Shown here one piece after another: positions 27,043 to 61,339 of a stretch of DNA of 64,000 nucleotides (position 1 is the first letter of the stretch; the number at the start of each line of letters is the position of its first letter). The notes under the pieces are model-generated. The model worked only from the letters and a program-made list of their open reading frames with translations. It was not told the DNA's origin and searched no databases. Both the position numbers and the translations under genes were made by a program. Where the stretch lies: NCBI GenBank assembly GCA_964304625.1, contig OZ199839.1:10089201-10153200 (forward strand), given 5' to 3'. Source of the DNA: Kudoa neothunni (taxonomy: Eukaryota > Animalia > Cnidaria).

Positions 27043-29964
27043 ATGGAGATATTCTTCTTGTTGCTTAGTTGTTTTTCTCAATTTTTATGTAATTAATTAC
27101 AAGTATTAACGTGAATAAAAATATTTAGTCATAAACAAGGATTTTGTGCATGCAGCTCTAGATGCGTCTAGCGCCCCTTCTAAAAACCTATTCTATAACA
27201 TAGCAGATAGGGATAAAGTACATCTCACATTATCTGGAACAGAGTACGTTACTAGTGGGAAAAAATGCCTTATAAGAAAGGAAAAGGATAATGCTGTTGA
27301 ATTTGATCAGATTAATTCTTGCCCTAAAAATGAAGTTTCTGATGGAACTGGCAAATGCGTTCGATCATGTTTCGGGAGTGATATTAATCTGGCGTTTAAT
27401 GTCCTATCACCTAGAACAAAATATATTTATGTTTATTCTGGGGAAGTTGCAAACACAATAAAAGATAAGAATACTGGAGGAGACGTATTTGGACTCTCTA
27501 TTCGTATATTACACTAAATAATTACATATAATAAATTATAAATAGCACTTTTGGTGAATCCATTAATTTCAATCTCTACGGATACTAACAAAAAATTAAA
27601 GTTTGAGACTAAAACATGTCCGAATGTTGCTTGTCCTATTTTATACAAAAGTGTTGAATACGCCAAAGGTACCGCTGGTGGTTCTTGTATAGCTGAAAAT
27701 CAAGAGAATACGGTTGATTTTGACATATTGATTCCTCATTATGAGATGAAATGTACAAATTACCCCAGATTTTTCTACAATATGCCCAATTCTTATATGA
27801 AAAAAAATATTGATGTGTATAAACCTCAATACTATGTGACATATAAAGAAGGTGATGATACAAAGAAAAAATACCTTCTCAAATTCCAAAATACATTCCC
27901 ATCAGAAATATGTCTATTCAAGATAAAGGATGCAGCAAACAATGCCAGTGGTAAAACAGCCACCTATGCATCATCGTGTGGTGGTGAAACAGGGGAAAAT
28001 TGTTACGCTCCATGCGATAATGTTGAACTGACACTTGCCGCATCTAAGCCAATCGTAAAAATATTGATTCAAACTAGGCATCATAAGCCAGAAGCTACTA
28101 ATAATATCTTTGAAGGTTATGAAGCAACCAAATTCGGTACGATTTATAGTAAATGTACTATAATTAATATTATTTATAGTTATCGTAGAAGGTACAAGTG
28201 CAAGCACCTTGTTAACATCACCATCCGATGTGGGAATAACACTTAATCGACCTTTATTTAGTCCAAAGAACAACCCTGGGAAATTTTACAATTGTTTATT
28301 AGAGCATTTTCCAGCCGATAAAATCAGACCTGAAACAGGGACTACTTCAAGATGCTCCGACGATATGTGTGGAAACAACTGCCCAGATATTGCTGACATT
28401 ATTGGTTTGGAATCAGGAAAAGCATATATAATTCAAATAAGAAGTGGAGGAATAAATGATTACGGTGACGTCAAAGAATATTTATTTTTCAAAACAAGTG
28501 ATTTAACACAAAAGATCACATTTTATAATTTTTTTAGATAATAAAGATGGATCAAATTTCGTCACTACGGCATCAACCGTAACTGACGTAACTGCTGCAG
28601 TCAAGGCGATTGACAGAACTGTGGGAACCGACCCTACTGAACCAACATGTTCATATTACATCAGTAAAGCAGGTAAACACATGTTTGTAGAAGCAGAATG
28701 TGAAGATAGTAATCCATGCAGAGGATTTTGCACGGAAACTCAGAAATTGATAAATTTACACCTGAAAACAAATTATGATATCAAAGTTGTTTCAAATAAA
28801 GATTATGGTGAAAAAATATTTGAAAATGTTTCAACTAGTAAAAATAAGCTATCGCAATCATATTTAATTTACATTTATTAGCCTTTTCAACTCTCACTCT
28901 ATCCCACAAATTCCTAGACAGGGGATTTCAAGTGATCGGAAACTTGGCAACTGCATATCCAGAAGCGATCTGTAGCTACAAAATTAGAGTAAAAGATGAG
29001 ACTAGTTCAAATGAAGTTTATTCCTGTCCCACGGTTACCCCTAATCCTCCACAGGTCATCCCACCTACTACCAATGCTGACCAGTCTTCCATAAATAAAG
29101 AAATAAGACAACCTCAGTTGGTCGATGCGGCCAATTATCATACTAATAGAGTAGTCAGGGCCAGTATTGGAGCGGATTCAACTCTAAATTCATCTACGAT
29201 CACCCAACCTAAGTTCCCTCCATGCAATAAACCACCACTATGCAGCAACATAATAATTAGTGATGGTTACGAGGCTGATAAAGAGTACCAAGTATTGGTT
29301 ATCGCTGTAGGCAGATCAGAAGAAGTTACCATCGATATTCCCAAAAGTACAATCTTTACCCATCAAACTATAGAATTTTGAATGTATCACACATAAATAG
29401 ATGTTCCTCCCGAGAATCCAGTGGAAGTAGACAAACAAATCACAGTGAATATCGAAAGAGTCGGTGAAACCTTAAAAATCACATCATCGTTTCCAAAAGA
29501 AAAGGCTGAAAATTCAGTGTGTCAATGGATTTTGAAAAATACGAGCGATCCTTGTTTACCTGTAGTTAAAAAATGCGTTACTGTTGGAGTTGGCGGTTGT
29601 ACGCTTCCAACATGCAAATCATTCATAATTGATGATGTAAGCGATACCAGTGATTATCATTTAACGGTTATTCACTCGGAAGATCCTACAGTTAAAGGCG
29701 TGGGGAGAATAAAACGAGGTATTCAACATGAAATAATTAATTTAATTATCAATATAGGAGAAACCTCTAATAAATCAACGTAAAATTATGTAAAAATAAT
29801 GTTAAATAAAATTTATTTAGGGCGAGCATCAAAATGTATTGTTTTTTTTTATTTGAGCATGTTTGAATGAGATAATATTTAGAATAATTGGGATAGTTGT
29901 ACCGATTCTAATTGTCGTCGTAGCTGTTGGATTGTACTATGGTTGCATAAAGAATAAAGCGTAA
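27043..29964 (+). CDS. Uncharacterised type I membrane protein (about 843 aa): signal peptide, seven Cys-rich modules (several FN3-like), TM helix, short tail
   Basis: Exons 27043-27088, 27129-27503, 27546-28136, 28180-28497, 28538-28837, 28882-29346, 29401-29718, 29758-29779, 29821-29835, 29883-29964. All introns are GT-AG, 39-54 nt, and the frame stays open. Starts MEIFFLLLSCFSQFLF and ends IIIGIVVPILIVVVAVGLYYGCIKNKA*. Paralog of 49575-51892. Confidence 0.85.
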
Positions 29965-31024
29965 CTGTAGACTCCAAGCCTACCCATTGACCTAATTAAA
30001 AATTATAACATACATATGCATGAATTTTAATAGCATATGTTTATCAAAAATTTAGATGTTATTTCAGTCATTCGAATTTTATTGAATCGTTATATAAAAA
30101 TAAGTTGGAATTGTATAAGTGCTAATCATTATAATTTCGTACTATAAGACAGCTCTGTTATTCAGTCATTGTAAATGATATCGAATTAAATTGGGGATTA
30201 CCATAAATTAATATAATATTTATTAGAATTAGAGTAAATGAGTTAAGAGTAATGTTGAAACAAACATATTTAAATAAATATGAATATATTTTTTATTTTC
30301 ATTGATAAATACACAGTAAAGTCTCCATACAACGTAGAAAACCTAAATTTGCTACGATGTAACAAATCATTACATATTATAGGGGTGGGCAACAGAGGTG
30401 GCCGGAAGAACCAAATATTGATGATGGAAGAAAATGTTTCCACTTTCGGAGCCATAACATTAAATATAGGCTCAAACATCAAAAGCTTTATCATAAATAT
30501 TATAGAATACATACATTCCAGGCGAATCTCGAGATAATTATTGAATCGGCATATATATATGCGTGTCTGTAACCAATTAATCTATTATTTCAAGAAAGTG
30601 GCTATTGACATGTTAAATAATATATATGTGACACTAATGTTGACTCTACTTTATTTATTTCTGGTCCACCGCTTTGCTTTTTTGGGCCAGAAATAATTAA
30701 ATCTGTGAACGACTTGTAAGTAAGAGTTGCTGAGGTTAAAAATTTCTATTGCGCTACTTACATGCCTTTTAGAATTAAACTTTAACGTTCCAATAAATAT
30801 TCTATGCCTTATTTTAATTCATAAAATTATACAATTTGATTGGAATCAGCGCATACCGGAAAATAATGAGCAAAAATTAGTTTCATTGGAACACTGCTGA
30901 TTCGTACAAATAAATTTTGTAAACAACACTTTTAAATATCAATAAAATAAAGTAAATGAACAACAACATTTTATACGATGAAAATTCTACAGTTGAAGCT
31001 AGAACAAAACTTACGCTCCAAAAA

Positions 31025-32109
31025 GGATGGCGTCTCTTTCTACAACAACAATGCATGTGCGAGGTTATAAGATTAAACTTATTTTCATTATTTTTGTATG
31101 TTATTAGACGAATAACTAAATTTTAATAAATGATATCATATTTTTATATTTTATTATAACGCATAAATAATGTTTATGGCCAATTCTAGCGTTTAAAAAC
31201 AAATGCAACAATTCAGAAAGAATTTAATGCTATATGAGATTTTTAAAATGAGTTATTGATTATAAATAACTTTTTTTTATTATTCATATTTATTCGTGGT
31301 AAAAATATTTTGGAGAGCGATTTCACTATTCGGGAAAACTAGTTATCGAGGAGTCCGGACAAGATGACTGATGATGTAATAATGAGCACTTTTTTATGTT
31401 TTTCCTCGATACAACAGAAACTATGTTGATTTTATGTTTAATAATGTCATGGTTATCAAAATCGGTGAAGAAATGTTTTGCGATTGTTTTTTATTTTGCA
31501 CCAAATACCGCGTAACCATCTACTAAGATTGGTAAAACCATCTGAGGCCAGTATAGAAACATTTATTATCCTCATTTGGATTATAAACAATAATTCAATC
31601 GGCTCAAAAAAACATAATGTTGCATCTGAATATGGCGAAATAATGACAAACAGCGATGTATCAGCTGACCCGAGAGTGTACACCGAAGAAGATAATGAGT
31701 CTAACTGTAATTAATTCATTCAAACTCATAATGAAACCAAAATATATGAAAATAATAACTATGAATACAAAAGGTGACAGACAGATTATTTCATACATTA
31801 AATTAACTTAGTGAAAGTGATTGTAGAAAATGATTTATTGAATTTAACTCCTCTTCACAGCAGTATGAATAAACTTAATTTTATTATGAACGAGGTAAAA
31901 GCTACGCGTAGACCCAAAACAATGAATACTTATTTTGAATTTGATAAACAACTTCTTGATATCTAAATGTTATGTTTGTAAAAAACATAAGCACTTTGTT
32001 TGTAAAATTGTTGTGGGTTATTCGCTTTATAATATATAAATCTAACGGAAATAAAATTAATCTAATAATCCTGGCACATGCACCATTGTTGTGGAAAGAG
32101 ACACTACCC
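31025..32109. mobile_element. Non-autonomous TIR element (about 95-bp TIRs, degenerate 8-bp TSD)
   Basis: GGATGGCGTCTCTTTCTACAACAACAATGCATGTGC... is inverted at 32016-32109. Flanks TCCAAAAA / TCTAAAAG match 6 of 8. Confidence 0.65.
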
Positions 32110-32322
32110 TCTAAAAGCAACAATTGAGTTAAAATATAATTCATTTTATTTAAATTTCGAATATATTAATGTCAAGATAATTTTAAATATTAAATTAACA
32201 TAAAAATGAGTATCTAATAATACATAAATAAAAGTATAATCAATAGCATACATTACTAAATAAACCAAAAAGTAAAATATTTTAATTAATGAAAAGAAAA
32301 AAAGAATATAAATAACAGCAAA

Positions 32323-34672
32323 TTATACAACTTTATATATAGGAAACCAATTAGTTATTTTCCTTTCATTCCTAGTCGACTTTTGGGACTTTTCTACCGA
32401 AAATAGAGCAGATTCGAGTTTGTCATGATCCCAATCAAATTTTTCATTACAGAACTTAAACAGCGATTTCTTATTGATTTTGCTCCACGAAAAAACTCGC
32501 TTAGAATAATCGTCAACAATTGGTTGTAGGAACGAATTTATTATGGTTCTGTTAGGAAAACTTTCAGGTAGCGATAAATTTTTTAATTTTTTCATTATTG
32601 GATGTGTTTCTGTTTCACATTGTACAGCTTCTTTAAATTTTTCAAGGGTATCAAAAGCACTATTATTTGTGAAAAATTGATTGACAATAGAGAGGGCCTT
32701 AACTGGCCCTATATTTTCGATGCCAGAAGTGTAATCACAACCACTCAACACAGCAAAAGCAATCAATTGAGCTCTCGATAAAGGCATATCACAACTATCA
32801 AAGATGCGTCCATACCTACTAGATAGATGTTTAGTGGTTTTGATGGTGGCTCGACGAATATCTCCAAGTTGATGCAAAAATCCTTTAAGCACTCTTTTAG
32901 CGCCAAAAAGCAAAGCATCTCCATCGTTAGTGAGAACGAAGTCACATTTGGATATTCTACAATAAAATTACCAGGCCACATATTACAAACCCAATTTAAT
33001 ACAAGTTCAAATGAGCACATTGTGCTTCCGCCTCTCCAGGCGCGAACATCCACGGTATACCGAAGCAATCAAAAAGTTCTATACAGTCTCTAATAATCTG
33101 CTCTGTTACTGATGAGGCTTGTCTCTCAATCTTAGTTATTTCCCCAATGAGGGAAGATGTATCTTCTTTAATTTTTTGAGAAACGTTTTTCAGATCAACT
33201 TTTTCTGATTTTAAGCTCGGAAATATCCTTTCAACTGCTGGTTCGTCCTTAATCTTTAATAAATCGTTTTCATTTTCCTCCTTAGCACCAACATCTATAA
33301 TATGACTTTGGACGACATGCTCTTTTGGTTCAACAATAAAATCTTCCGTCGACCCCAGCACCATATTTTCAATCATTACATTCTTAGTTGACTCCTTAAT
33401 AGGAGAATTTGTGGATAATTCCGATTTCATTATATTTATATCATTCAACTTATTTAACTCTGTAGCTGTCTCAATTTTATGGTCAGCTGGCGATATTGGT
33501 AGAGACCTCTCATCGACACCGTCGTCATCATCAGAAAGATTAGATTTCACAAATACTACCGAGCATTTTGATTTTTTTAGTGGATCTCTTATTTGGGTGG
33601 GTAATTTGCGTTTGGTAAAGTTCATGGATTTCAATTTGGAGACGTTTACTTGGATACCATCAGAATCTAACTCACTATCCTTAACATTGTTATGCGAAGC
33701 GATGTAGCCTTCTTGTTCCAGTAAAACATAATAAGAATGTTCATCTGAAGCTAATCTACTCCCTGATAAGATTTTGTCTCTGCCGATTTTATTGTATTCT
33801 TCATTGAGTTGAGTGAGGTTGTTCTGTCTGAGTTGGGTTTCAATTTCATTCAACTTGTGTGTGATACGAGCCTTTCGCATAAGTCTCTGATACTACAAAA
33901 GTATTGAAACAAAGCAGCATAATACAGGATTGAACAAATTACTTGATATTTTGAAATGTCATCAATTTTTTCGTTAAAAGAAAACCCAACGTTCATATCA
34001 TACTTCAGTTGCTCCCTCGCATCATTTAATAGTTTGTGCTGTTCAGGGAGTGAAAGTTGTTCAAATTTATCTCCAAACATACTCGTATCCTCATTAAGTT
34101 CACTTATTTCTAACAAATCTTCTCGATCGACACAACAAAATGTATCAACATTATTGAATATTTCCATAGAGCTTTTTATAGGTACATCACGAACCGGAAT
34201 ATTCTTCAAATATTCCCTGTGAGGAAGATCGAAAGGATCTTTGTAGACAGGTTGTGAAGTGCTAACTATGAATTCACTATTGGTACTGTTGTCGATATCT
34301 GGATTGCAAACATTTAGTTCTGCAGCAACCAATTGATTGACAACTAGCCTCCGATGTTTTTGGTCGCGTTCACTCTGTTGATTAATCTGTCGTTGTTTTC
34401 GCTTTCTTCGAGTTTTCTGCTTTATAGTGGGCGCCTCACCATCAAATACAAATATTGGTTTCATTCCAAGCTCTAGCATTCGGCATATTCTCTTGAAAAT
34501 GTAAAGGAGGTGTGCATTCGCCATTTTGGAACCGTCCACATTTCGCATTCCTTTGGTTGCAATATTCAACCACACACTCACATCCACTGCAGCTGTAGCA
34601 CCATTAAGATCATCATAACAAATATTTTTTCCAGCATTATCTATTATTTTCCACAATCCTTGAACCCCCCAT
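32323..34672 (-). CDS. ERCC5: XPG/Rad2 nucleotide-excision-repair endonuclease, 3 exons; start codon one base out of frame in this sequence
   Basis: N domain GVQGLW...AVDVSVWL...NAHL...KPIFVFDGEAPTIK. I domain FGIPWMFAPGEAEAQCAHL|ISKCDFVLTNDGDALLFGAKRV. H3TH motif LSGCDYTSGIENIGPVKA and PIP-like ERKITNWF. Two short GT-AG introns at about 33893-33942 and 32957-33002 join the three ORFs. Confidence 0.92.
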
Positions 34673-35565
34673 GATCTAGTGGGCTGACTCTCAAATCAGT
34701 TTCAGTCTACTCCTACTAACTAACGACTATCATATAATCTAACACGCGCATCACAAAATAATAAAACATTGTTCGTTTACTCTTGATTCACGAGAGAGTT
34801 TATATGTTAGGCAATACTAACAATGCTAATACATCGAATTTTCTAAGCTCGACTTTGTTTATTACATTCTAAGTGATAAATTACAGCGAATAATTTTATA
34901 ACGCATATTAAATTATTTATAATTATTTCAACATCGTTTCAAATAAAATTTCTGAACGAAAATTATTAGAATAATCCCCCTGCTCGCGCAACATATAACC
35001 AAAAGGTCATTTAACTAAGTAAATAATTGTGCATGGCACTCTTCATTTCTTATTAAACAACGATTCACAACAGAAACTACACTTAAAAATATTATCTTTC
35101 TTATTTTTTATCAGAAAATAAATTGCAACTAGCCACGTTTGTTAACTTGCGAAGTTTTTAAGATTAAGATAAGTTTGGCAGCCAATATCAAAACTGCAGT
35201 CATCAGTTCTAAATAGCTCGTAATCTTCGTAATTATATAGCATAAATTCGAATTCTTAATTAGTTTGTTATATAAAAATATTAACTCTTGATAGGTATCG
35301 TTAGTCACGTATAATATAGGTCACAATTAGGCCCTCAACAAATTGAGGGTAAGGGGATAATCCTCTACTTCGAAGAGATTAAGTCAATCTATTAATAAGA
35401 TAGCGTGATTCGTTCACAATGTATTTTTGTAATCAATGTTAGGAGAAATTTTTTACCGAAATTCAGCAGTGCATTATTTTTTGGAATAAACTATTTTATC
35501 TATTTTAAAGTATCAGCTAAACTACAGTATTAAAGTATCAGTGTAGCAGTTGGGGTGTTGTCGCA

Positions 35566-35790
35566 TACAAAATCGGAAATAAAATCGTTTCCTACAATTC
35601 GGGCTGTTAATTCACTTCTTTTTTAAAAGTTTTTTCATTTTTGATCTTATCAAAAAAATACACTATGTATTTAAATTCAGCTCAAAAAGAATTAACCTAT
35701 AAACTGGAAATAAATCTTAAGTCGAGCACGTTCGGATTCGCGTGGAATCTCTATGTTGTTGATAAATACATCAAAAATATTATTATTTCT
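35566..35790 (-). repeat. Partial copy of the 18426-18737 MITE
   Basis: AATCGGAAATAAAATCGTTTCCTACAATT...GTCGAGCACGTTCGGATTCGCGTGGAATCTCTATG matches the reverse complement of 18540-18737. Confidence 0.7.
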
Positions 35791-37326
35791 CTATTATTTT
35801 AACAAATCCAGAGTCGCTAATTGTTCAATGAATTTTTTATTCGTATCTGTTAATAAAAGTTTGTAAATGTTCAATCTTGTGATTTCGTATTTTACATACA
35901 GACCTTTTTGATTAATTCTATTCAAAACTAAAACAAAGATGTTTCAATTTAACTATGGCGTAACTTAATGTGATTTTTAGTTTATAAATTTTTTTGCGTA
36001 GTTTATTCGTGAATAAAAAAATTTTATAATAATATTTGTTCCAAAAATCCAACTTGAAAATTTATAATTTACTCTATTAAGTTATCTTTTTATTTATATA
36101 CACTAAGTAATTATCAACAAAAATATTCAATTTAATTTTTTTTAATTAAAGTAACTTTAGAACAGAACATTCGTCACAAATCAACATGTACGTTTTTTAA
36201 ACATTTTATGTTAAATCTATAATGGATGTTAATATGTCAAATGCATTTTTTTATTATTTATTTCAACAATATTTCTGCGTGGTTGAATGTTTCAGGCTTT
36301 TTAACTAATATAATTAATTTACTGAGACGCATTATCTATCAAAATGTTTTTTAAAACTAGTAACAACCCCAAAACGTTTGAACCATGAAATCCTCAATAA
36401 TCCTCACTTCAACACATAATCACCTTCGTTTTTTTAAGTCTAGCCTAGCTACAATGGATCAACGATGACAGGTAGATTAGTTTAATCATTTCACGGGTAA
36501 ACACTAAACCAAATATTGAGGTCTCAAGTATTGTTATTTAAGGGAATGGTTATTGGCATGATATGTAATATCCAGTTGTCACCATTTTCGACTATATTTA
36601 TTAACGACCCTAAGAGTGAATTAATGGGTAAGAAATAATTAGATATCACGAATTTGAAAAAATTACGTCTGTATACAACGTGTGAACTAAAGCTACTCGG
36701 ATAAAATTTGTTTCTTGGGCTTACTTATGCTTACATGACGATTTGAATTAAAATTTACCAAATTAATAGCCTCTGCCATTTTATTTATATAGATCAGACG
36801 TCACCAAAGTTTTTAACTGGCGGACTAAATTTTTAATGTCCAAACTCTTCGAGGGACGGATCAAAAATTTTGTTTCGAAAAGCAATTATAAAGAAGAAAC
36901 AAAAATAATATATTGAATGAAAATAGGTCATTCCTGGCGAAAGTTATAGCATGAATATAACGCTAATCTGGGTTTAAAAATATAGAATTGATATCCGATC
37001 TAATTATAATCTACAATCTGAAAATTCGGCCATTATTCTGCATTTTAACTTATAAAAATTAATTATAAATGCTTTTAAGGTAGATATTAAAGTAATATTG
37101 CGGAATAACATCAATTTTACTGCCTACATTTAGATAGTCATTTTTTTAGATTTCTTCTTAATCTAGAATATGAACTTCAAGAAAATTTATCACTTCAAAC
37201 AATCTTCATAAAGATTCTAATACGATTAATATCGAAAGTTGACAACTGGTTTCCGTCTGCACGGATTTTCTCACGAGAAGTCTCCATTCAACTCTATTCA
37301 ATAAAATAGGCTTTGATGTCAACGCG

Positions 37327-38055
37327 ATGAGGTCAAAAAGTTCTTTACAATGTCTGTTGATAATGAATAACAATGGATTGGGTGTTGATGCTATGGATTG
37401 GTGTAGAATTCATTCCTATCTCACCAAAAAACAAATAACAGTACAAATCGCCACCAAATTAGGTGGAGCAATCAAAATTGAAAATCTGGATCCTACATCT
37501 GACGAGCCTTACCAGCAATATATTCAAAATAATCCTATCAACACATCAGTTCCATTTGATAGTGTAGATCCTTCCGTGTTCGACTGTGTGATAATTCCTT
37601 CATGTGAAAATTATTTAATGGAGTTGGTGAGTTGCAACCGACTCGGATACATACTCTACGAGTTTAACTCACTTAACAAAGTGATATGTGCCATTGGTTT
37701 TGGAGTAGCAGGTTTACTTTCTGCCAAATCGGACTCAATCAAAGACTTCTCTTCTCTTGTTCAAAATTCAGACAACACCTCAATGAAATGGTCATTTGCA
37801 GGTCGGTCAATAACTGGTCCAACAATTCAACAAATATTTCAACATTTCCACTCAAAAGATAATGCTTCCTGTGATTATCCTATGTTTTTGGAAAATCAGA
37901 TTCGGTTCGAGGGAGGTAATTTTGTTTCCTCGACCGACCTATCCAAACCCCACATTGTCATAGATAACAATCTAATAACTTCTCAAAATACAGTTTCTTA
38001 TGGATTACTATTGAAACTTGTAGTTAATTTAATGAAATCAAAAAACTCTGGATGA
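37327..38055 (+). CDS. GATD1: GATD1/PDDC1-like DJ-1/PfpI-fold protein (FERRY complex subunit Fy-5), single exon
   Basis: CLLIM...GV, VQIAT, VIIPSC, KVICAIGFGVAGL, WSFAGRSITGP, HIVIDNNLITSQN. IPSC and the Gly at the DJ-1 nucleophile position are GATD1 hallmarks. Confidence 0.88.
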   Translation: MRSKSSLQCLLIMNNNGLGVDAMDWCRIHSYLTKKQITVQIATKLGGAIKIENLDPTSDEPYQQYIQNNPINTSVPFDSVDPSVFDCVIIPSCENYLMELVSCNRLGYILYEFNSLNKVICAIGFGVAGLLSAKSDSIKDFSSLVQNSDNTSMKWSFAGRSITGPTIQQIFQHFHSKDNASCDYPMFLENQIRFEGGNFVSSTDLSKPHIVIDNNLITSQNTVSYGLLLKLVVNLMKSKNSG

Positions 38056-38160
38056 TATAAACTTAATTTGCTTTTAGGAGCGATGTCATTTTAAATTTGT
38101 TGTTTATTTGCTTTCGAAGCTTATCGCTTGCCAATTATTCATTTGTTTTAAAGGTAATTA

Positions 38161-40051
38161 CAGTAGGCGGCCGATCTTGTACACCTTTCAAAAAATTGTT
38201 ATGATGAAATTTTTAGTATCTAGTCAGCTTTAAATAAAATATATGTATAAATTTTTAGCGTTTTAACTAAATATAAATAACTTCAAATAGTTGAAGTGAG
38301 ATAATAAATGCCACATGACTAATTGATTTTGCACACTTTTCTCGACCATCTTTTGGTTTAATTTTTGTTTGATATCAATTAAATAATACAGATGGCAATA
38401 ACTAATTTAAAAATTATTAGAACTTTGGAAGGTTTATGCAAAATAATAAAGTATTTCGAATATCGCCACCCTAAATGGGATTCTTCGTAAGAAAGAGAAA
38501 CTAATTCCTACTGTTGAAGGAGGATTGACATGAAATAAAAGAAAAAACATAAATAATGGATCAAACGTTGAATATGAGCAAGATGTTTACGATTGGATAT
38601 GTTTGATAAGGGATAAAAATCGAAATCACCGCCTCTGATATCATAAATAAAAGAATTGAACGTTCATTTGAAAATATGAATCCGGAAATTGTGACAATTT
38701 TGTGGTTTAAGGGCTTTAAAAACGATTTAACCTAAAAAATTAATTTCCCTGGCGAAACCGCAGATGTGGATTCTGCAGTTGTTGAAGAATGGATTCCACA
38801 ACTTAAAAACATATGTGAAAATTATAGCTCAGATTGTAAATATAATATCGACGAATCTGCATTATTCTACCAGCAACATAGAGGTATATGTAGTTTTTTA
38901 ACATTTTGATTTATTTTGTAGGTAAAAGTTTTGTAGTTTCATCAGAAAGAAATATAAAAGGGATAAAACAATCGATGAAGCGAGTAACTATTTTTATGAG
39001 GTGCCTCAATGAGCGGTGAAAATCTCGAACCACTAATAATCGGCAAGAACAAAAACCCTCGTTGTTTTAAGAATATTAAAAAACTTCCGGTGTCATCTGG
39101 AAACAATAATAAAGGTTGGGTGAATAGTGAAGTATTCTTGAGATATATAACCAATCTTAATCAATCATTTGAAAAAAGGAATAAACATGTGTTATTATTT
39201 CTTGATAATGCATCCTCTCATTGAAAAAAAAATTGAGAAATATTAAAATGGTTTTTCTCATAAAAAAACGAATGTTTTACAACCTCTTGATCAGAGGATA
39301 ATATATTCGTTTAAATCTTCCTACAAAAGAGCTATGATTAAGGGATATATTGCTCGTGTTGAAACAGGTATTGATCCCATCCCTCCGAACCTATTAGAGG
39401 CAATGTTTCTTATAAGAAGTTCTTGGGATATGGTTATTCCAGAAATAATTAGAAATTGTTTTAAAAAGGCGTATTTTCCTATTGATGAATTGTCCTCAAT
39501 ATCACTACCACTAAGCGAGAATTTAATAATAAAAAATGCATCTAATGGAGAAAGCAATGATATTATATGTCCAGTGAAAATTAATGATCAAATATAGGAG
39601 ATGATTCAGGAGGAGGATGAAATTTGTTGCTTATATAATGGCCATTCTACGTTAGATTTAGACAGTAGGGTAATTTAGTGGATCTGGTGAGGAAGTGCCT
39701 GAAGATAAATCTGAGGATACTCCTGTTCTGAATTTCAAAGAGGCTATTGATTCTATCAGTGAACTTCAAAAATTATTTCTGAAAAACGACATTAATTGAT
39801 CAAAAATTCTTTCAAATCTTGAGAACAACGTATGCGATATCATGTGGAAATATACTAAACAATCGAAAATAACCGATTTTTTCAAACGTTAGAATATAAA
39901 TATTATCTAATTTACTATATTGAATTTCATCTTTATCTAAATATATTTCCTAGGCGATTAAGAATTAAAATTTTACTTTTACGTGTTAAAAATATAATAT
40001 TAAAATATTGTTTGCACACGCATAAAGCGTGTAAAGTCAATTAAACTACTG
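38161..40051 (+). mobile_element. Decayed pogo/Tigger (CENP-B-like, DDE_1) transposon
   Basis: TA|CAGTAG...CTACTG|TA ends. Fragments YNIDESALFY, MSGENLEPLIIGKNKNPRCFKN, KGWVNSEVF, VLLFLDNASSH, LQPLDQ, IIRNCFKKA, KQSKITDFFK, with stops and frameshifts. Confidence 0.88.
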
Positions 40052-41019: not shown

Positions 41020-41825
41020 TTATTCACGTTCAACTAGAACTAAAAGTCCCAAGATACCAAGAAAAACATACTAAAACAAAACAGTTGAATAACCACAACA
41101 ACCGAAAATAGCAATACCTTAATCATTGGGGTGTCTGTCATTAGAATTGTTAGCATGCCAAGATATGGAATATTGCTACACGAATTTAGAATTTTTTCGT
41201 CCACACAATCAGTTACCCTTTAATAAATCCTGTGATTTGGTCAGGTAAAACCCACAGTTCTTTATCGTTATAAAGACCACGATCGTCGCCATTGTTGTTA
41301 TCTCCTTTGGTTAGAACTTTGAATTTTCTTGTTTTCCCCCTAGATCGAATTTTCAGTCGTTGGTCATCCATTACCCAAATAATTCACTATTCATACGTGT
41401 CATGGATAGCCACAACTCTATGAACTATAGGGATCTCTCTTCCTTCTATCTTAAATACTACAATGTCTCCCACAACCACCTCTTTGTAAGGATCATAACT
41501 GACAAATAAAAGATCCCCTCGGTAACACATTGGCTCCATACTTCCACTAAACACAATTGAAATTAAACTCCACACTTTTAAGCAGTTTGGTTATTTTCCG
41601 GTAACCTAGATAATTCATTTCAACTCACCCACCTTAAAACTACAACTATAGGGCTCTCACAGTTGGCATACACACACAATCCTTTCCATATCATAAATGC
41701 CACCGATAATACCAAACCTAAGCTGGCCACTTGATTAACCGACTAAATTATTGTTATTGGGAATTTTTATAATCAAACACTTGTCGAAAATCGTATCTTT
41801 TGCATTCATCAAAAAGTCCTAACAT
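41020..41825 (-). CDS. SEC11: Signal peptidase complex catalytic subunit SEC11, 6 exons
   Basis: Spliced product [15 protein letters not shown]|SVNQ...IWKGL...ESPIVVVLS|GSMEP..RGDLL...REIPIVHRV|...LTKGDNN.DDRGLY...|IPYLGMLTI...|[16 protein letters not shown], with five GT-AG introns. Confidence 0.95.
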
Positions 41826-44800
41826 TTTATCAGATGACTGTGCGCGCACGGTATACAATAATGCTGACACGTAGCATTTTTTATTGCTGTATCTCCTGTA
41901 TCTTTATGTATTAATACATGGTTTTTTTAATGTTTTAATTGTAAAATGGATTTATCTTAAGAATTTTAATTGATTTATTAGGAAATTTTTGACATAGTTC
42001 TCAGAAATTATTATTCATACTATAATTATTTAATAATTATACTTTCATTAATTTTTATTCAAAATTGCTCATGAAAATCTTCTTAAAATTTTTTTAGGAC
42101 ATTGTTATATTACAATGACATATGGGTTTTTCGTAATATTGAGATATATTTAGATTTTTGTAGATAAAATTCTTGATTTATTGTATTGACAAAAAATATT
42201 TCTATATAAATTTTGTTAAAATTTTAATGTTTAAAAACGATTTCATTCGACCAATTTTTTAATGAATTTATATTATGTCAAATTTTGGATTTTAAATTCT
42301 GCATTTCCAGGTGGTAAAAAGATAGACAGAGGCTATTGACATGGTAAAATTTAATCCTAAACTTCATATATGCAAGCGAAATGAGAATTGATAATCTCGG
42401 CAGCTCTTACTTAAAAGCTGGTATCAGATTAAATAGAGTCAAAACTAATTCCACCTGAATATTATTTTATTTATTTTTATTCAAATACATTTAGACAGCT
42501 TCTTTTCTGGGTTTATTAAATTTTCATTAGCCCACTGCCACAAAATTTAAATTAATATCTAGCTGAGTATATAACAGCGCTTCCCTATTCATTTTAATTC
42601 TCGCCCCCATCATGTACGAGATTTAAAAAATTATTAAATTCTAGGCAGGAGAAATATTTTTACTAAAGTTATTTTAAAACGAAAACAGATTTGAATTAAA
42701 TTAATAAAACTGATAATAAATTGTTTTGACTTTTTTCTTGTCTTGATTGGACAATTATTTAAGTTAAAATGGGGTTCTTTATCAGTTAAAGATATAGATA
42801 AATCATTATTTGTGGACAAACTAGATATAATAATATTTTAGTGAAAAATATAAAATGAGAATAATTGCGCTTGCGCCAAATTTTTGATTTTGTATTTTTA
42901 TTGTTGGTTATAAATTTATAAACTAAATGACAAAAATAAACATTTGACCAGATCTAGAATAAAAAGTTTTAGTTTATATAATTTTTGAGTCCAAATTGAT
43001 ACTAATTTAAAGGATTAAAATTTAAAATAATTTAACAACAAAAATAAATATCTTAATCTTAATGCTAGTGAAAGTTTAATTACAATTTTCTCTATAGTTT
43101 ACTTAAGAAAATAAGCAATAAAATTTTAAATAATTCGACCTATTTCAAAACTCTTAACGAATCATTATCTTTTTTATTAAAAATTAAAAATTTCATAATT
43201 TTCTTTGTTGGAGTATTAATAATTTCAACTAAATAATTTATTTTAAAATTAAAATGAAATAAATTATCAATTTTATTTTATGTACTAATTAATATAAAAT
43301 GAAATTAATTTTCAATTAGATTCTTCAAATGACTATTTTTTTATCAGATTTATTTTCAGCTTCGATCGCGCACATGATATATTTTCGAGAGAGATTCTGA
43401 TTACCTAGAATCGGTACATTATGTACGAAGCAAACAACCATAAAATTTTTTCGTTGACTCAAGGTGAGTCTTAGACCCTCAGTAACTGTCTTCCTGGCGT
43501 ATGGAATAAGAAATTTGTTAGGTCTATTCATCACAAGATGGCGGCCTGTGAGGCGAACTTTTCGTCTTTATTTTATACAAAAAATACGTGTCCGAATTCA
43601 CTATATCTCAAAAAGATTTTTGCGTGTCTCATTGACCAACAAAGTGCTGAGATTTGAATTTCTGATTACAAATAGAATAAGAACTAGAAAGCCCCCAGAT
43701 CCAATTAATATTGAGCAGTTATTTTTTGAAACTTTTTTTTTGTGGACTATATAGATCAGTGTTTTCCTACAAATTTTACACCTGTATCCCATCCTAATTT
43801 CGGTATTCACTTCACACCCCCTCCTCCATGTGAATGTCAAGACTCAATTATACTTTTTATTTAAATGCGACAGTAATAATACCAATGAAAAATGTCTAAA
43901 AATTATAATTTTAGTTTATATTTTAATTTTATAATTTTCCCAATTACTTCTAAAATAATTTAAAACTAAAATGTTTTGGTTAACTCAATCTGCTATACAT
44001 TATTGAAAAAGGATGAACATTATCTTTTCACTACTCATGAGTTAAAAAAATGATCGGAGCTATTATTCATTCCTGCTTATATATATATACGTACCATTTT
44101 TATGTAAAGTAATAAATAATTCGAATAGATCATGTTGTTATAATTATTTCAATATATTTGATGCAAAAATGAATATAAAGGTAATACTAAACTATAAAAA
44201 GTATGGTCGCTTGATAAGTTTCGTACTTAAAGTTTAAAATTAAATAAACCAAATAAAGATAGCCAATTCGTATAGTTCACAAGAAATATTATTTCGAAAT
44301 CAGTTGTTATTTGTTATTTATTTGATCTGTCGATTCTCTTGCTCTCGTCGGGTTTTCATAAGTAGTTCAAAGCAGGATATTTTGTTGGATTATGAAACAT
44401 GAAAATCGTTTTCGATGTATAGTGAATTCCAATACTTATTATTTGTATATAATGAAGTCGATAAGCTTGTTTCATATGCTATCTTGTGTTGAATAAATCT
44501 AGCGACTTCCCTATTCTATATTGAGTCAGACGTTAACTTAAATTTTGAGGCTGTGGGTTAATAAAAATGCACTAGATTCAAAACAATATGCCTTTTAAAT
44601 ATACCTTAATAAAATAACTAATATATATATATTGTTAAAATGGGTATTCATTTATTAATACGCATAAATAAATGCTTTGATTCTTGTTTTACCTATATAT
44701 TAAACATTAAAGAACAATTCAACTTAGATTTATATCGGAGGTAAGGTACAAATTCTAAAGTAAAACTTGAGACGTAACAATAAAAACTACGAAATTAAAT

Positions 44801-46689
44801 GATGGATCTCAAATTTAGATCGAAGACAAAGTTACAAATACGCCGTGGTTTCATTTTTATGGATGTAGATTATTTCTAAGTAGATAAAAATGTCGACAAC
44901 ATACTTACAGCTTAAGCATATAAATATGTTATTTTGAAAGATAACAAAGTTACGATTTTACATGAAAATAGTGATAGTTAGGTTTTGCACGCTGAATAGG
45001 TTTAATATAAACTATTACCATACTGAGCTATTTTATAGAATTTAACAGAATAAATTATATCCCATTTTTTGAATAGATACTGTTTGATATCAAAACAATC
45101 AAAAATTTTATTACACGTATTACTTCCTTACATGATTTAAAAGGGACAAACGAAAATTACGAAGTGAATAAATTAAGATTAATTTTTAAATTTATTTTAG
45201 AACGACTCCTACACCGTTTGTAGGGAAACAATGATATAGACGAATGTTTATTTGGCTCATTTAATTTTTTTCCCTTAAGCACATAGTTTAATTAAACGAG
45301 AATAATTTTGCTTCTAATATTTCGTAATATTTATAACAACATTTTTGATTTTTGGTTATTATTTTGGGTAAAAATGATATATTCAACCAGAGACAAATCA
45401 TAGATCCAACCATTTAGCGTTGATTTATGACACAGAAACAGATAATATTCATCCTTCTTAAATTATACGTAGAAAGTTAAATTAATCTACACAGCTTTGT
45501 TTTTGATTTATCCATTTTATAAATATTTAGGAAAATTTATATTTTAAAATATAAACTAAAATAATATAAAATATAATTTTAGGGTATTTTTCGCATTTAT
45601 ATAAAAAGTAAATTTCGGGTGAAGTTGAATCTTGACTTTTTTATGCACGAGGAGATGCAAAATAAGCGCTGAAGTTAGCATGGATGTACGGGAGGAAAAT
45701 ATGTAGGGAAAAAACGCCCAAATAAGAAATAATAACACAACTATTAAATTCCATCAATATTAAAATATGACATGTTTGAATAATTATTATTTTTAATGAC
45801 ATCAATAATATTTTGTGATAAGAAGCACGGAACACAAAAATTTTTTAAATTTGAAAAAAAACGTTCTTATAGAATATTCCTAAATAAAGGAATAAAAATA
45901 TTTATGTAATAATATGTTTTACTTGGCTAATAACAAAGAAGTATATTATTTTTTGCAATTTTTAAGAAGAATATCGCTAATTTATTTGACCCTCTAAGGG
46001 GCTTGGGGTCTTTTAGACATCAAAAGGATTTTAATTTGTTAATGGAATATTTATTGTTTATCTGAGATACTTAAAATTTAGTCTTTTCTCCTAAATTATT
46101 TTATTAAATAAATTCATAAAACATTTGATGTGGAACATTGATATCTTATCAAACAAAGTTTCTGTCCTCCAAGGGGCTTTGGGGTAGAAGTGACCCCTGA
46201 ATTTTTTAGTTCAATGAATGCATAATATTATCACAAAACGATATGGAAGATTTTAAAAAATTCTATTCAAGGAATACTGAGAAATTAAATAATTATTATT
46301 CAAGATAATCCTATTAATTATGCGGGGTCATATATGTCGTAAGCCGTCCTTTCAACAAGTATTATGATATTGTGACGCTAAGGTTTATTATCCGAAACAA
46401 ACAAAATTAACAAAGTTACTAACTCCACTAACGATAAATATTTCATAATAAATAGGCCTTTAATAATTTACAGATAGATTTGTAGAACAATGACAACATT
46501 CACCAATGAAAGATTATAGTTAGAGCGATAATTAATCCTATAATTTTAAATTTGAATTGTGACATTTATTAAACAGTTTATAATAGGAGTGCAAATAATT
46601 TTGTCAAATAATTTATTCTTGATATTGGCGTTAAACATTTTCTACATTGATTATCTAATATTTGTACTATATATGAAATTCTCATTCTT

Positions 46690-46970
46690 ATAGTTGGGTC
46701 TTGAGCCTTCCACGAATTGGCGCCAAAACGGAATCCCCGTTGCGGCAAGAATTGGAAACCATTTCCTTCCTTATTCAACGAGTATTTGGTCCCCGCTTCT
46801 TCATGAATTATAACTCTTACATTGTCCCGTCGATTCGGTGAAGAAACGTGGGACCAATGTTCCCCTCAACAACGATCACATCATGAAACATTCTTACCGT
46901 CGGAAACGGCGGTACTAATTATCAAAAATGAAGGTAGGACCACATCGGGATGTAGGGCCTCTCACCCTAT
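46690..46970 (-). mobile_element. Possible decayed retroelement fragment (GC-rich islet)
   Basis: Local GC enrichment. The minus frame reads CDRC*GEHWSHVS, resembling a broken Gag zinc knuckle. No other motif is secure. Confidence 0.25.
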
Positions 46971-49574
46971 TTAAACATGTTCTTAATATTTTACTATTTG
47001 ACTCTCTCGTGCTTTTTTTCAATTCACTCTGTGTATTCTTTGGCATTTGGCGCGTATACAACATTTATGAATTCCTGTATTTAATATTTAATAATACGTA
47101 GCTGCTAAGGAGAAATTGTTAAAACGCATAGAAATCAGTTGCAAAAAATAAATTATAGAATACATCAAGGATGCTTTACTCAATTAAGTGTTATGGCCTG
47201 TAAAAATGATCACAAGGGGCCAGGGGGATACATAATAGATTAAAACAACTATCGTGTATATCTGAAAGATAATATTAAATGTAAATTCATGTAGGATCAA
47301 AAATAAACTATTCATCGTGGTCGATTTGATTCGCTGTGTCTGTTTTTGATTACGGTCACTATTCTGCATTTTTACAGCATAGATTGTCTTTATTAGAATT
47401 TATATTTTATTTCTCATTAAAATTTTTGTTTGTCATTGTTTCAAATGAGACTAAACTTACTTTGATTATAATCACGAGTTATTACGAAATAATACCTAAT
47501 CTTACTGAAGCAGATCACCGAGGATTAATTATGCAGTAATTGATTGTTTCCTCAATATTCTTTGAGCAGAAGTTCTTCATATTTTTCTCATAACTTTATA
47601 ATAATTTTTTGAATATCTTAAGAGAACAAAAATTCTGGGCTCTTTTTACCCCGAAACCCGTTGGAGGGTGGTTGTTTTTTCATTTGTTAGTGGGTTAATG
47701 CGGTAATCCAGTTAGTTAACCAATTACATAAAACTAAGTTTAATAAAAGCTGGATTATTTATTGTAAATCTATTAACTTTTAATAAATTTCAAATAGATG
47801 AGTGAATCATTTGCATATAATATGTCTAAAATGTTATCATGACAAAAATTCAAATAGAAATTTTTTTCACGAATGATTTAGTTATAAATATTAAATTTTC
47901 GTGTTAAACTGTTAGTTAGTCTATTTCTATGATAAATTTTTATAATTTTTAACGCCTGTTTTTAAAAAATCCACTAGATAATTAGTAAAAAGTTTCTGTA
48001 AAAATTCTAAGTACTGCAAAGAAAAGAAAAAATGAAAAATACATTCAATAAATTGTAATACTATAACCTAATATATATCGTACTGAATATTAGCTATATA
48101 TAGGGAAATATTGTAGGAAAAACAATAATAGTATCTAATCACAATATATCAGTACCTAAAAACCAAACATATTCCAAACAAGAGTATTACTAGGTTACGT
48201 GTAAACGAATTGCTATAGGATGTCATGCACTGAGAGATCCATAATCAGTAAATTACTCTATAACTAAAAGTAAAATTATATGAACATACACAAAGTTTAA
48301 TTTAATCAATCATTCGTTAATTAATTAGTAACAAATAAATCAATATTTTATATTATTTGGAGATTATAATTTATAGTAATACTTCAAAAAATAATTCTAT
48401 TAGTTTTACGATGGCACTTTAAGAAATAAATTCTACAGTTTAAACCAAATAGTTTTATTCAATAAATAGAACCAATTAAAATGTAGGTATATATATCATT
48501 AATTGATCCTTATAGTTGTATCATGAATCCAATGAAATATTATTTCATTAATTATTTATTTATCTGTGTTATGGTGTATACAAAATGATGTATTTTACTT
48601 CGTAGAATCTAAAAAATTTATATCTGGCGGAATAAATAGAAATTTTAATCATATACACATTTTGTACAACTCAAATGGTTGGATTTAAATGTAGCAGATA
48701 ATTCTTCATATTTGTTTAAACACACATATTGTTAATGTAAAATTTATATAAACATTTCACTAAAAAGTACCATGTATATATTATATATATATATATTTGA
48801 TTTGTCAGTTCATTCATTCATTCATTTTTATTTATATTTATTTTACTAATTTAAAGAGATATGCCTTATATACAAAAAAATTGGAATTCCTGACAGGTAA
48901 GCTAGATAAACTAATTATGATAAAAATCCTCAGAATTTTCCAAAAAATATTAACATTTAGTTATACTGTACTATTTCTATAGTAATTTGTTATAAATAAA
49001 AATAAACTTATGTAATGAAAATTATATAAATATAAAAATTAAATGAAGATTCTGGTTTCTTGAAAAATTTAATAACAAATAATAATCTTTGACGTATTTT
49101 CTAGTGAATATTTTCATCTTAAATATACGTTATCTAATTTACTATGAAAAAGAATATATAACTTTATTGATATATGAATAAACTTAATATTTAATGTTTT
49201 GCGATTCATGATAATACCTTGTACATAATGCATTAAGGACATTTACATCCCAAGTACCAAAATTATTTTAATCGCCATCGTAAAAATTGGTAAAAAAATT
49301 TTAAAACATACAAATTCAGATTCTGTTCAGTGTTAAATTTATAATTTTCGGTGAAGACATGTTAATACATCAAATGTAAAAAATTAACACCCACGAACTT
49401 CAATTATACTTATTTAATGGATAGTCATAAAATAGTTAAAAACTTTATTTAGAATATTCAAAAATCTTTGTCAAGCAATGCGTAGAATTTAGGTTTTATT
49501 TATTATGTGTATATATACAAACTGGCATTTCCTTTTAAAGTTAAATCTACGTAAGAAGAATAGAAATTACCTAT

Positions 49575-51892
49575 TTAATTACCACCACCTAGTGATTTTT
49601 GCCTCTTTCTTAATAATCTTTTATATTTTCTTTTTACTTTAATTCTCCTCTCTATAAATTGATCATATCATACCATATTCGAATGAAACATACTTGCTGG
49701 AATAACCACGCTAACTTTATTTGATTTTGTAGCAGGTATGACATGAACCGTGTATTGTTTCCTGGCTCTGTATTTATGATTATAGATTATGGATGAGCAT
49801 AAAGGTGCAGATGAACATTTCCCGGCATTAGGATCTTTATAGCTGTCGGAAACAGACGCTGAATTGTCTTCTACCCCCAAATCTGAGGGCAAACAGGAGT
49901 ATACGGTCTCATGTTTATCGTTCGTTTTCACCTGGACGACGAAATAACAAGTAGTGGTTGTTTGTTTACCGTTTGAAAATTGTCCGTTCAGCTCAAAACC
50001 TCCTCGAATGTGTTTGTATGATACTTTAAAAGTATCCCTCGCTAAATGTAGTCCATATTTGCACGCAATTAAGATAATATACTACCTAATGTAACGTCTT
50101 TGTAGATAACGGATCCATAGGTAGAATGAGCCGTAACTTTGAAATCGTACAGAGCATTTGGATCCAATTTGACAATCGCCTTGGTGTCTCTACACTTACC
50201 TCGACATGGATAGCTGTCAGTGCATACGGCACATCTGTATATGTTTTTTCCAGCAGGGCTTAGGTAGTAAGCGCATGTAGGTTCATCCGGAGAATTGCCA
50301 GGATTGCCTTCGAGAACCTTGGCCAAAATAACATTACCATTCAAGTGTAACCCTTCGTTTGAGAAATGTTTATCTTTCTTATGAGCTTTAATAATATGTA
50401 ATAAATGACATAAATAAATGTCACCATTGGCTACCTGTTCTAATAAATATATGTTCTTTAAACTTCACAGTTCCGTCATTGGCAATATTGGCTACTTCTA
50501 ACACGTAAGGACTGCCACTTTTTAGATCATTCAGCACTAGCTTGCTGCAATCTTTTTTGCAATTATGAATTTGAGGGAGTGAACTTCCGGGTTCACAACT
50601 TGTTACATCTCCCACAGGTTTGCGAGGTTGATCTGCATGATAGTGCGAAATCACGCACGTCTCAAACTTTTCAGATTCATCTGACGTTGGTTTAAATAAT
50701 TGAGCATTTAAGGTTAACCCATTTTCTGTGTATTCGGATAGCAACTCGTTATCATTTTCATTGAATACTACACAAAATAAACACTATCCAGCTCTGTTAT
50801 CAATAGTTTATTACCAAATTTTTTCGCTTTGTATCCAATGTAGGTGTTGTATATTTTGAATAATGGGAAATATCGGGTTTGGATGATGACCTCTATAACC
50901 GGAGTGGACTCACTAAGTACCAATTCGACGTCTCGGCACAACGAATAGCAGTTCGAGTCCCCACTGTTTCCACACTTTGATTCGTAGGGCTTATTGTTAG
51001 ATGCAGAGTGACCACTTCTCGCTCTGAACAAACACATCTCAAATGGAAACGCGTTTGTGAATTTTAGTAGATATTTGTGGGTATCCCCACCCTTCGAACG
51101 TGTCACATAGTAGTGTGGTTTGTAGATATCAATTGTAGACATCATAAATACGTTGGGAATGCTATAGGTTAGACTCGGAAGACTTTCGCATCTCATTTCA
51201 AATCGAGGAATCATATAGTTCATTTGGACGCTGTTATCTGTGTTGTCTGTGGCACATGACTTACTGGCTGTTCCTGCAGCATATTTTATATCTTCATAGT
51301 AGATAGGACATGCAACTGGGTTGCAGGTTTTGGTTGCAAACTTCAATTTTTTCGTTTCACTATCAATAGAAATTCTCACGCTGGGATTAATCAATAATGC
51401 TATGAGTTGATAAAAATAATTCGAAAAACTCTATTTACGTGTAGAGAAGGCAAACAAATGTTTTTGTTCTGCGCCGCTATCACCATTGGCAATTACTTGG
51501 ATATATTGATTTTGACGCGGATTGATGGCGTCAAATGAGAAAGTGTAGCTACTTCCTTTTTTTCCACAATTAACCACACAGATATTTCCATCAGATGATT
51601 CATTCTTAGGGCAATTTGCAATATTATCAAAGGTAGAGGTGGCACTATTGTATTTCAACAATCGGCACTTTGTTGCGTTATTGAAATCGCCAAGTTCAAG
51701 TTTAAAGGCCATTTCATTTTCGACGCCCAGTTGATAATTACTGTAGGATAATTTACTGCTGTTATCGCTGTCATCTAATGGTTTCGTTTCAAAACTGTTA
51801 ATGTCTAATGTGTGTAACAATCAATAAATTTAAGTTTATTATAAATTACATAGCAGAACCAACAAAAATAATATTGTTGAAAACTTTGGCAT
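49575..51892 (-). CDS. Uncharacterised secreted protein (about 683 aa): signal peptide, six Cys-rich modules, polybasic C-terminal tail; paralog of 27043-29964
   Basis: Exons 51892-51850, 51804-51439, 51399-50815, 50767-50435, 50385-50086, 50041-49694, 49651-49575. Introns are GT-AG, 39-49 nt, all phase 1, at the same positions as in the paralog. Starts MPKFSTILFLLVLLY and ends KRRIKVKRKYKRLLRKRQKSLGGGN*. Confidence 0.85.

Positions 51893-60054: not shown

Positions 60055-61339
<1,285 letters not shown>

Follow-up and report, generated by a model that had tools for sequence, protein, structure and literature searches.

Modular surface proteins built from domains resembling fibronectin type III (FN3), and multigene surface repertoires in parasites, are both kinds of system that are already known. 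Tandem FN3 arrays occur in fibronectin, tenascin, Dscam, LAR/PTP-delta and gp130, and disulfide-bearing variants of the domain are known in IL-17RA and CD45. Among cnidarians, the Alr proteins of Hydractinia, whose genes reside in the allorecognition complex (ARC), are composed of a V-set first domain, I-set domains and an FN3-like fold termed ECS with six invariant cysteines (PMC9546547). Among parasites, the Giardia-type VSPs are defined by at least 5-6 CxC or CxxC motifs, a cysteine content of more than 5-10%, a single span of the membrane and a C-terminal motif that is short, basic and conserved (10.64898/2026.02.11.705288). For myxozoans, recent papers either state that antigenic variation has no known molecular basis or report small VSP-like sets in another genus. 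The DNA examined in this study (the window) is a 64-kb stretch of the genome of Kudoa neothunni, a myxozoan and thus a parasitic cnidarian, found in tuna muscle. The window contains two related genes, here termed A and B, which encode chains of cysteine-rich modules with an FN3-like predicted fold and which belong to a family with hundreds of candidate loci in this genome.

Gene A (27043-29964, + strand) consists of 8 exons totaling 2556 nt, or 852 codons including the stop (851 without it), while gene B (51892-49575, - strand) consists of 7 exons totaling 2052 nt, or 684 codons including the stop (683 without it). All exon models of both genes, checked by coordinates, have GT-AG introns and zero internal stops. 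A tblastn comparison of the open frames of A with the region of B gave five collinear matches (26-47% identity, E 5e-11 to 4e-60), and together with the intact gene models these matches bear out the placement of both genes proposed in an earlier note on this DNA. The exons, and the modules that they encode, are listed below, first for gene A and then for gene B.

27043..27088, + strand: A exon 1, start codon and hydrophobic predicted signal peptide, 15 codons plus 1 nt, followed by a 40-nt phase-1 intron
27129..27503, + strand: A exon 2, module 1, 4 cysteines, phase 1-1
27546..28136, + strand: A exon 3, modules 2 and 3, 8 cysteines, the best conserved exon of the family
28180..28497, + strand: A exon 4, module 4, FN3-like predicted fold, hypervariable cysteine-bounded loops
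28538..28837, + strand: A exon 5, module 5, 4 cysteines, well conserved
28882..29346, + strand: A exon 6, module 6, in which about 65 residues rich in Pro, Thr, Ser and Gln are inserted between the second and third cysteines
29401..29779, + strand: A exon 7, membrane-proximal module 7, 5 cysteines, phase 2 end
29883..29964, + strand: A exon 8, about 20 residues predicted to span the membrane, a basic tail of 6 residues that includes a juxtamembrane cysteine, stop
51850..51892, - strand: B exon 1, start codon and predicted signal peptide, 14 codons plus 1 nt
51439..51804, - strand: B exon 2, module 1, 4 cysteines
50815..51399, - strand: B exon 3, modules 2 and 3, 8 cysteines, at most 52% identity to any other copy
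50435..50767, - strand: B exon 4, module 4, 4 cysteines
50086..50385, - strand: B exon 5, module 5, 5 cysteines
49694..50041, - strand: B exon 6, module 6, 4 cysteines, without the long insert of A
49575..49651, - strand: B exon 7, 24-residue polybasic tail and stop, in place of module 7 and the anchor

In both genes, introns 1-6 are phase-1 introns at homologous residue positions; therefore, exons 2-6 are symmetrical 1-1 exons with lengths divisible by three. Both genes open with a hydrophobic mini-exon of 14-15 codons that is predicted to encode a signal peptide. Counted from exon 2, the numbers of cysteines per exon are 4, 8, 4, 4 (5 in B) and 4, with a further 5 in exon 7 of A. This corresponds to four cysteines per module of approximately 100 residues, exon 3 carrying two modules, and four modules have their last two cysteines in a C-x3-C spacing. 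The earlier note had described a shared signal peptide, six identical phase-1 intron positions, modules of about 100 residues with four cysteines each, and a set of conserved blocks and FN3-like motifs, all of which were recovered in the gene models and their translations.

The two genes differ most at their C-terminal ends. Gene A is a typical family member with a predicted membrane anchor. After module 6, gene B uses the same donor position as A and is spliced to a 77-nt terminal exon; neither a module 7 nor an anchor exon that could belong to B was found anywhere in the window, and no other copy of its polybasic terminal exon was found in the genome. The six modules of B, all of its cysteines and all of its splice sites are intact. 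The insert in module 6 varies among paralogs and is much shorter in B; it may represent a mucin-like hinge or a glycosylated loop.

The earlier note had described two paralogs, and while the paralogy stands, the number does not: the genome contains 367-491 candidate loci, depending on the query. Exon 3 of A retrieved 491 candidates genome-wide, exon 3 of B retrieved 452 and an exon-5 profile retrieved 367. In each of these searches 150 candidates were scored, all of them at E values of at most 4e-57, 4e-46 and 2e-27, respectively, and the scored copies were free of stop codons in 148 of 150 cases for exon 3 of A, in nearly all cases for exon 3 of B and in 146 of 150 cases for exon 5. These searches suggest a family of roughly 350-490 copies in K. 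neothunni, nearly all of them open. The exon encoding the predicted membrane anchor has 97 copies in the genome, and those checked lie approximately 2.4 kb downstream of an exon-3 match on the same strand. Exon order from 2 to 7 is the same in 40 paralog loci, and a signal mini-exon followed by a phase-1 intron of 37-57 nt was identified by a simple rule in 26 of 34 paralogs.

Tandem arrays of family members are present on all three chromosomes. In one of them (C2:9.788-9.872 Mb), twelve anchor exons lie within about 84 kb, all on one strand, and further runs of copies occur at C1:16.30-16.91 Mb, C3:0.07-0.46 Mb and additional sites. Among the anchor exons of the C2 array (loci L006-L009, L013, L016, L018, L020, L022 and L023), nine have one common score in comparison with gene A, and another three have a second score in common. 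Copies are 40-78% identical; the nearest relatives of A are found 60-100 kb away, with 77-78% identity in exon 3, and gene B is an outlier to which no copy is more than 52% identical.

Predicted structures place the modules among beta-sandwiches. All searches, alignments and fold predictions in this study were made exon by exon. The AlphaFold2 model of module 4, built from 32 sequences, has a mean predicted local distance difference test score (pLDDT) of 78.6, a predicted template modeling score of 0.68 and a seven-strand-like topology. Almost all of its top 50 VIA matches are FN3 domains (Z 7.4-6.4 over 80-84 residues, with a root-mean-square deviation (rmsd) of about 3.2 Å), including those of fibronectin EDB, Dscam, tenascin, PTP-delta/LAR, ROS1 and gp130, and FN3 domains were also ranked first by Foldseek and the ESM Atlas. 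This outcome agrees with the beta-sandwich fold expected in the earlier note. The exon-3 model (28 sequences, pLDDT 65.8) is all-beta with two domains. Its best Foldseek matches were IL-17RA, FN3 arrays and cytokine-receptor pairs (E 1e-3 to 1e-2), and in VIA-align its two halves resembled Ig-like sandwiches (first half, Z about 7) and FN3 domains (second half, Z about 6), module 3 matching fibronectin FN3-1 at Z 6.1. The models therefore suggest that the modules are beta-sandwiches of the FN3/Ig-like type, the Z values supporting a fold class and not homology. In profile-to-profile alignments (hhalign), all four cysteines of module 4 fall into register with those of module 5 (E 0.0016); a weaker match between modules 4 and 3 (E 0.25) also keeps the cysteines in register, and because of these alignments the chain looks like an old internal repeat.

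Like the known FN3 arrays, the Kudoa proteins are predicted to be type I proteins with tandem seven-strand sandwiches of approximately 100 residues, in which one module generally corresponds to one phase 1-1 exon, the F strand carries a tyrosine-containing motif and the G strand is hydrophobic. Unlike these arrays, they show no significant match to Pfam fn3 or to the PDB, carry four conserved cysteines in every module and have no cytoplasmic domain. In addition, tryptophan is absent from modules 1-6, and the canonical strand-B tryptophan of FN3 is thus gone. The conserved cysteines probably staple each module through disulfides. In module 4 of one paralog (L012:2138-2455, + strand), cysteines 2 and 3 are jointly lost and cysteines 1 and 4 are kept, which hints at a 1-4 and 2-3 pairing. 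Receptor kinases, receptor phosphatases and IL-17 receptors, which carry a catalytic or SEFIR domain on the cytoplasmic side of the span, were considered as possible identities and rejected, as A ends 6 residues past its span and B has no span.

Searches for named homologs gave no result in any of the databases used. No significant Pfam match was obtained for any exon of A or B or for the 32 module-4 paralogs; the fn3 family itself (PF00041), whose profile includes the strand-B Trp and the Tyr corner, was unmatched in all of these, with isolated Fn3-like families appearing at E 0.04-0.13. A module-4 profile search of PDB sequences gave only non-significant hits (E 0.6-1.3), three of four being to FN3-bearing proteins. 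When a profile of 28 exon-3 sequences was compared to 1.84 billion representative proteins with HMMER, 19 proteins were retrieved, all of them unnamed single-member fragments. An ESM Atlas feature search with exon 3 gave no usable match, and a homologue search with a 479-residue relative (P0017) returned only the query. The absence of a named homolog reported in the earlier note thus extends to orthology with any named family in the Pfam, PDB profile and 1.84-billion-protein searches. The literature searched describes no such family, the K. neothunni genome paper being silent on it (PMC12239612), and the surface families reported in another myxozoan are different, consisting of CxxC-rich or Plasmodium-like proteins.

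Eight of the 19 fragments were traced to two Logan runs and one metagenome assembly in the European Nucleotide Archive. The contigs of these relatives are AT-rich (17-35% GC), keep the module order 2-3-4-5-6 and are 23-54% identical to the Kudoa sequences; one of them holds eukaryotic housekeeping genes, including one that is 51% identical to its K. neothunni counterpart. The traced fragments and the shared module order indicate that the family is present in relatives beyond K. neothunni, which are presumably other myxozoans. As to taxonomic range, then, hundreds of copies were found in K. neothunni, but elsewhere only 19 fragments, the traced ones from three AT-rich datasets. By sequence, the family appears to be undescribed and specific to the Kudoa lineage. 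In three of the related contigs (L070, P0002; L068, P0017; L069, P0014), several modules lie in one continuous frame, and in L070 the equivalents of exons 2 and 3 show no length difference at the site of intron 2; therefore, either some introns are absent there or the contigs are derived from RNA.

Selection acts differently on the framework and the loops of the modules. The ratio of nonsynonymous to synonymous substitution rates (dN/dS) over whole exons is 0.29-0.46 among closer paralogs. When codons were divided into strands and loops by the predicted secondary structure of gene A, dN/dS was 0.16-0.22 in strands and 0.34-0.88 in loops, with the highest loop value before the last strand of module 4. 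Entropy profiles likewise show a conserved framework with hypervariable, cysteine-bounded stretches. Purifying selection holds the strands and cysteines, and the loops are far less constrained. Diversifying selection in the loops is plausible, although no class of sites has a ratio above 1.

Substitutions are also unevenly distributed along the genes. Between gene A and its two nearest relatives, dS is uniform over exons (0.53-0.80), and dN is 0.42-0.45 in exon 4 compared to 0.11-0.21 elsewhere. In one pair of neighbors from the C2 array, dS values of 0.00 and 0.13 for exons 5 and 6 stand beside values of 0.66 and 1.57 for exons 3 and 4. Such jumps from exon to exon between array neighbors indicate gene conversion or recombination at the scale of exons or modules.

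Compared to the variant surface repertoires of other parasites, such as the Giardia VSPs, the VSP-like and RIFIN/STEVOR-like genes reported in the myxozoan Sphaerospora molnari (10.64898/2026.02.11.705288) and the apicomplexan 6-Cys/SRS proteins, the Kudoa family is similar in forming a large repertoire of cysteine-rich, anchored proteins, in its short, conserved, basic tail, and in deriving diversity from duplication and recombination. Two features of this functional class were observed: a large repertoire of paralogs in arrays, and segmental gene conversion among these paralogs. No sequence or domain relation to these repertoires was found in the Pfam and 1.84-billion-protein profile searches, and the Kudoa fold is predicted to be FN3-like, not EGF/VSP-like or s48/45. 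No exon of A contains a CxxC motif, and B contains one; because of this near-absence, the proteins fall outside the published VSP definition (10.64898/2026.02.11.705288), and their resemblance to Giardia-type VSPs is confined to the span and the short basic tail.

Taken with the parasitic lifestyle of K. neothunni, these results are probably best explained by a variable surface coat or adhesin acting at the host interface, whether in the muscle and blood stages in tuna or in the annelid host. Family members would be type I proteins of the secretory pathway, with a signal peptide, six or seven tandem modules, most of them on their own phase 1-1 exon and with four cysteines each, a single span and a six-residue tail. 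A protein with a signal peptide, a long modular ectodomain, one span and so short a tail would be displayed at the surface and unable to signal alone, in keeping with the extracellular modular surface protein predicted in the earlier note. The repertoire would have been made by tandem duplication and would be continually reshuffled by exon- or module-scale gene conversion, purifying selection holding the strand framework and the cysteines while the loops, above all those of module 4, change fast. A copy number in the hundreds, arrays, conversion mosaics, fast loops on a conserved framework and parasitism all fit a variable coat or adhesin. The surface or adhesion role suggested in the earlier note is thus supported, and the parasite setting that it proposed agrees with the source organism; a function facing the host is likely. 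Gene A would be a canonical anchored member. Gene B may be an old, divergent and still intact offshoot; with module 7 and the anchor lost, its product would be secreted as a soluble protein of six modules. The polybasic tail of this protein could help it bind glycosaminoglycans, membranes or other anionic partners, or could hold convertase-type cleavage sites.

Several observations weigh against a variable coat or adhesin. In no site class does dN/dS exceed 1, and gene conversion confounds these estimates. The structural Z values are below 8, in the range where the tool warns of a merely common arrangement, the exon-3 model is of mediocre quality, and the disulfide pairing is read from cysteine patterns in the sequence. 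Kudoa plasmodia in muscle are intracellular, and antibody pressure on that stage may therefore be weak. Additionally, no reads came from three metatranscriptomic runs that share the species label of the DNA run containing the window, a result that does not bear on expression, and the K. neothunni genome paper reports very few parasite RNA reads (PMC12239612).

There are several potential alternatives to a host-facing role. The family may serve recognition or adhesion among the parasite's own cells (cell-in-cell stages, control of plasmodial fusion, or self/non-self discrimination), in a manner analogous or even homologous to Hydractinia Alr. Myxozoans are cnidarians, and the Kudoa family shares with Alr a clustered organization, a type I surface architecture, high sequence diversity, atypical Ig/FN3-like folds that are invisible to Pfam and extra or non-canonical invariant cysteines (PMC9546547). 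However, Alr is described as 41 genes in one complex, compared to several hundred copies on all three Kudoa chromosomes; its proteins combine domains of the V-set and I-set types with a single FN3-like fold that keeps the FN3 tryptophan, compared to seven FN3-like modules of which 1-6 are tryptophan-free; and its tails often carry immunoreceptor tyrosine-based activation or inhibition motifs (ITAM/ITIM), compared to a tail of 6 residues (PMC9546547). Recognition among the parasite's own cells is considered unlikely. It is less likely still, and in our view improbable, that the proteins bind host ligands (cytokines, growth factors or matrix proteins, for example) in a receptor-like manner or as decoys, in the way that cytokine-receptor FN3 pairs bind theirs, with the secreted product of gene B as a soluble decoy. 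The product of gene B is indeed predicted to be soluble, and the ectodomains of IL-17RA, gp130 and the IL-12, IL-31 and IL-7 receptors are among the best matches to the exon-3 tandem model. Those matches, however, are weak (E 1e-3 to 1e-2, template modeling score about 0.3, tandem rmsd above 10 Å), the WSxWS motif of class I cytokine receptors, a class also marked by paired FN3 domains with canonical cysteine pairs in the N domain, occurs in no exon of A or B, a tail of 6 residues is too short for signaling or for a SEFIR-type domain, and hundreds of copies would be unexpected for a dedicated ligand receptor.

Modular extracellular proteins rich in cysteine often serve as structural material, and the strong conservation of strands and cysteines would suit disulfide cross-linked parts of the spore or the sporogonic envelope (valve, suture or pansporoblast matrix), for which copy number would provide dosage. 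Dosage, however, predicts near-identical copies, and the Kudoa copies are 40-78% identical with hypervariable loops; a membrane anchor with a tiny tail would also be unexpected in a matrix protein, and a structural role of this kind is very improbable. Finally, the copies could be a non-functional dispersed repeat or a graveyard of pseudogenes. This explanation draws on the published annotation, which was made from protein hints only and in which 45.6% of the assembly is reported as repeats (PMC12239612), and on the zero reads in the metatranscriptomic runs. Against it, 146-148 of 150 scored copies have open frames, conservation extends to splice sites, intron phases and every cysteine, dN/dS is 0.16-0.46 and the module order is kept in divergent relatives. 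The non-functional explanation is already largely refuted by these data and is the most improbable of all.

If the variable coat or adhesin is displayed on the parasite surface, the family would supply candidates for antigens and for markers in diagnosis, allow module-scale gene conversion to be studied in a tractable system, and add to the FN3 fold a new version that is stapled by disulfides and free of tryptophan. Fisheries and aquaculture suffer major losses from myxozoans, Kudoa spoils the flesh of tuna and other fish, and very little is known about myxozoan surface molecules. A family of approximately 350-490 intact genes would constitute several percent of a genome with 5,316 predicted proteins, and its case cautions that hint-based annotation and repeat masking can conceal the largest gene family of a parasite genome. 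More tentatively, the family might form a true antigenic-variation or variable-adhesion system, in which several hundred cassette-like genes undergo module-wise conversion, one or a few are expressed at a time, and soluble B-like proteins act as decoys or matrix binders. This stronger proposal is possible but doubtful; if true, it would provide a metazoan counterpart of the VSG, VSP or var systems of protozoa, its building block being a cysteine-stapled FN3 module not known before.

The published K. neothunni assembly was recovered from yellowfin tuna long reads and comprises 40.2 Mb in three chromosomes (scaffold N50 12.0 Mb) and a circular mitochondrial genome, with a genomic GC content of 30.41% and a median intron of 49 bp (PMC12239612). 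The assembly examined here agrees with it, measuring 40,260,978 bp, with large contigs of 17.15, 12.04 and 11.05 Mb and one of 18,219 bp. A nematode origin was considered for this genome and rejected; no cuticle-collagen N domain was present, although the control gave no signal either, and the orthonectid literature offered no match. The window lies on contig 2; it is eukaryotic in character, with about 30% GC and introns of 37-57 nt, and is covered approximately 7-9x by DNA reads, the k-mer coverage of the parasite reads having been given as about seven (PMC12239612). The following genes were identified between and around A and B.

7524-7964, - strand: PDZ protein
16234-16887, - strand: inositol polyphosphate kinase
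32323-34656, - strand: XPG-type nuclease (XPG_N, XPG_I)
37327-38055, + strand: DJ-1/PfpI-like protein
41040-41575, - strand: signal peptidase S26/SEC11 exons
53968-54822, - strand: isoprenylcysteine carboxyl methyltransferase

Because of these housekeeping genes, A and B are regarded as isolated members that lie outside any array. Two long open frames rich in Asn, Gln and Ser (132-1124, - strand, and 60055-61339, + strand) are of low complexity and gave no Pfam match. The window also contains two transposase remnants, a pogo/Tigger-type DDE_1 open frame in broken pieces (39009-39597, + strand) and an open frame for an IS1595/ISXO2-like DDE transposase (22310-22840, + strand).

In the 18,219-bp mitochondrial contig, the first 10 kb gave no hit in standard tRNA and Rfam scans, and a permissive mitochondrial mode applied to the whole contig returned 14 doubtful calls. 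Mitochondrial genomes of Kudoa elsewhere measure 15.9-19.4 kb. The contig has a GC content of 44%, compared to about 30% in the nuclear genome, and uses TGA for Trp; its cox1, cob and cox2 genes are very divergent and are accompanied by several unidentified open frames.

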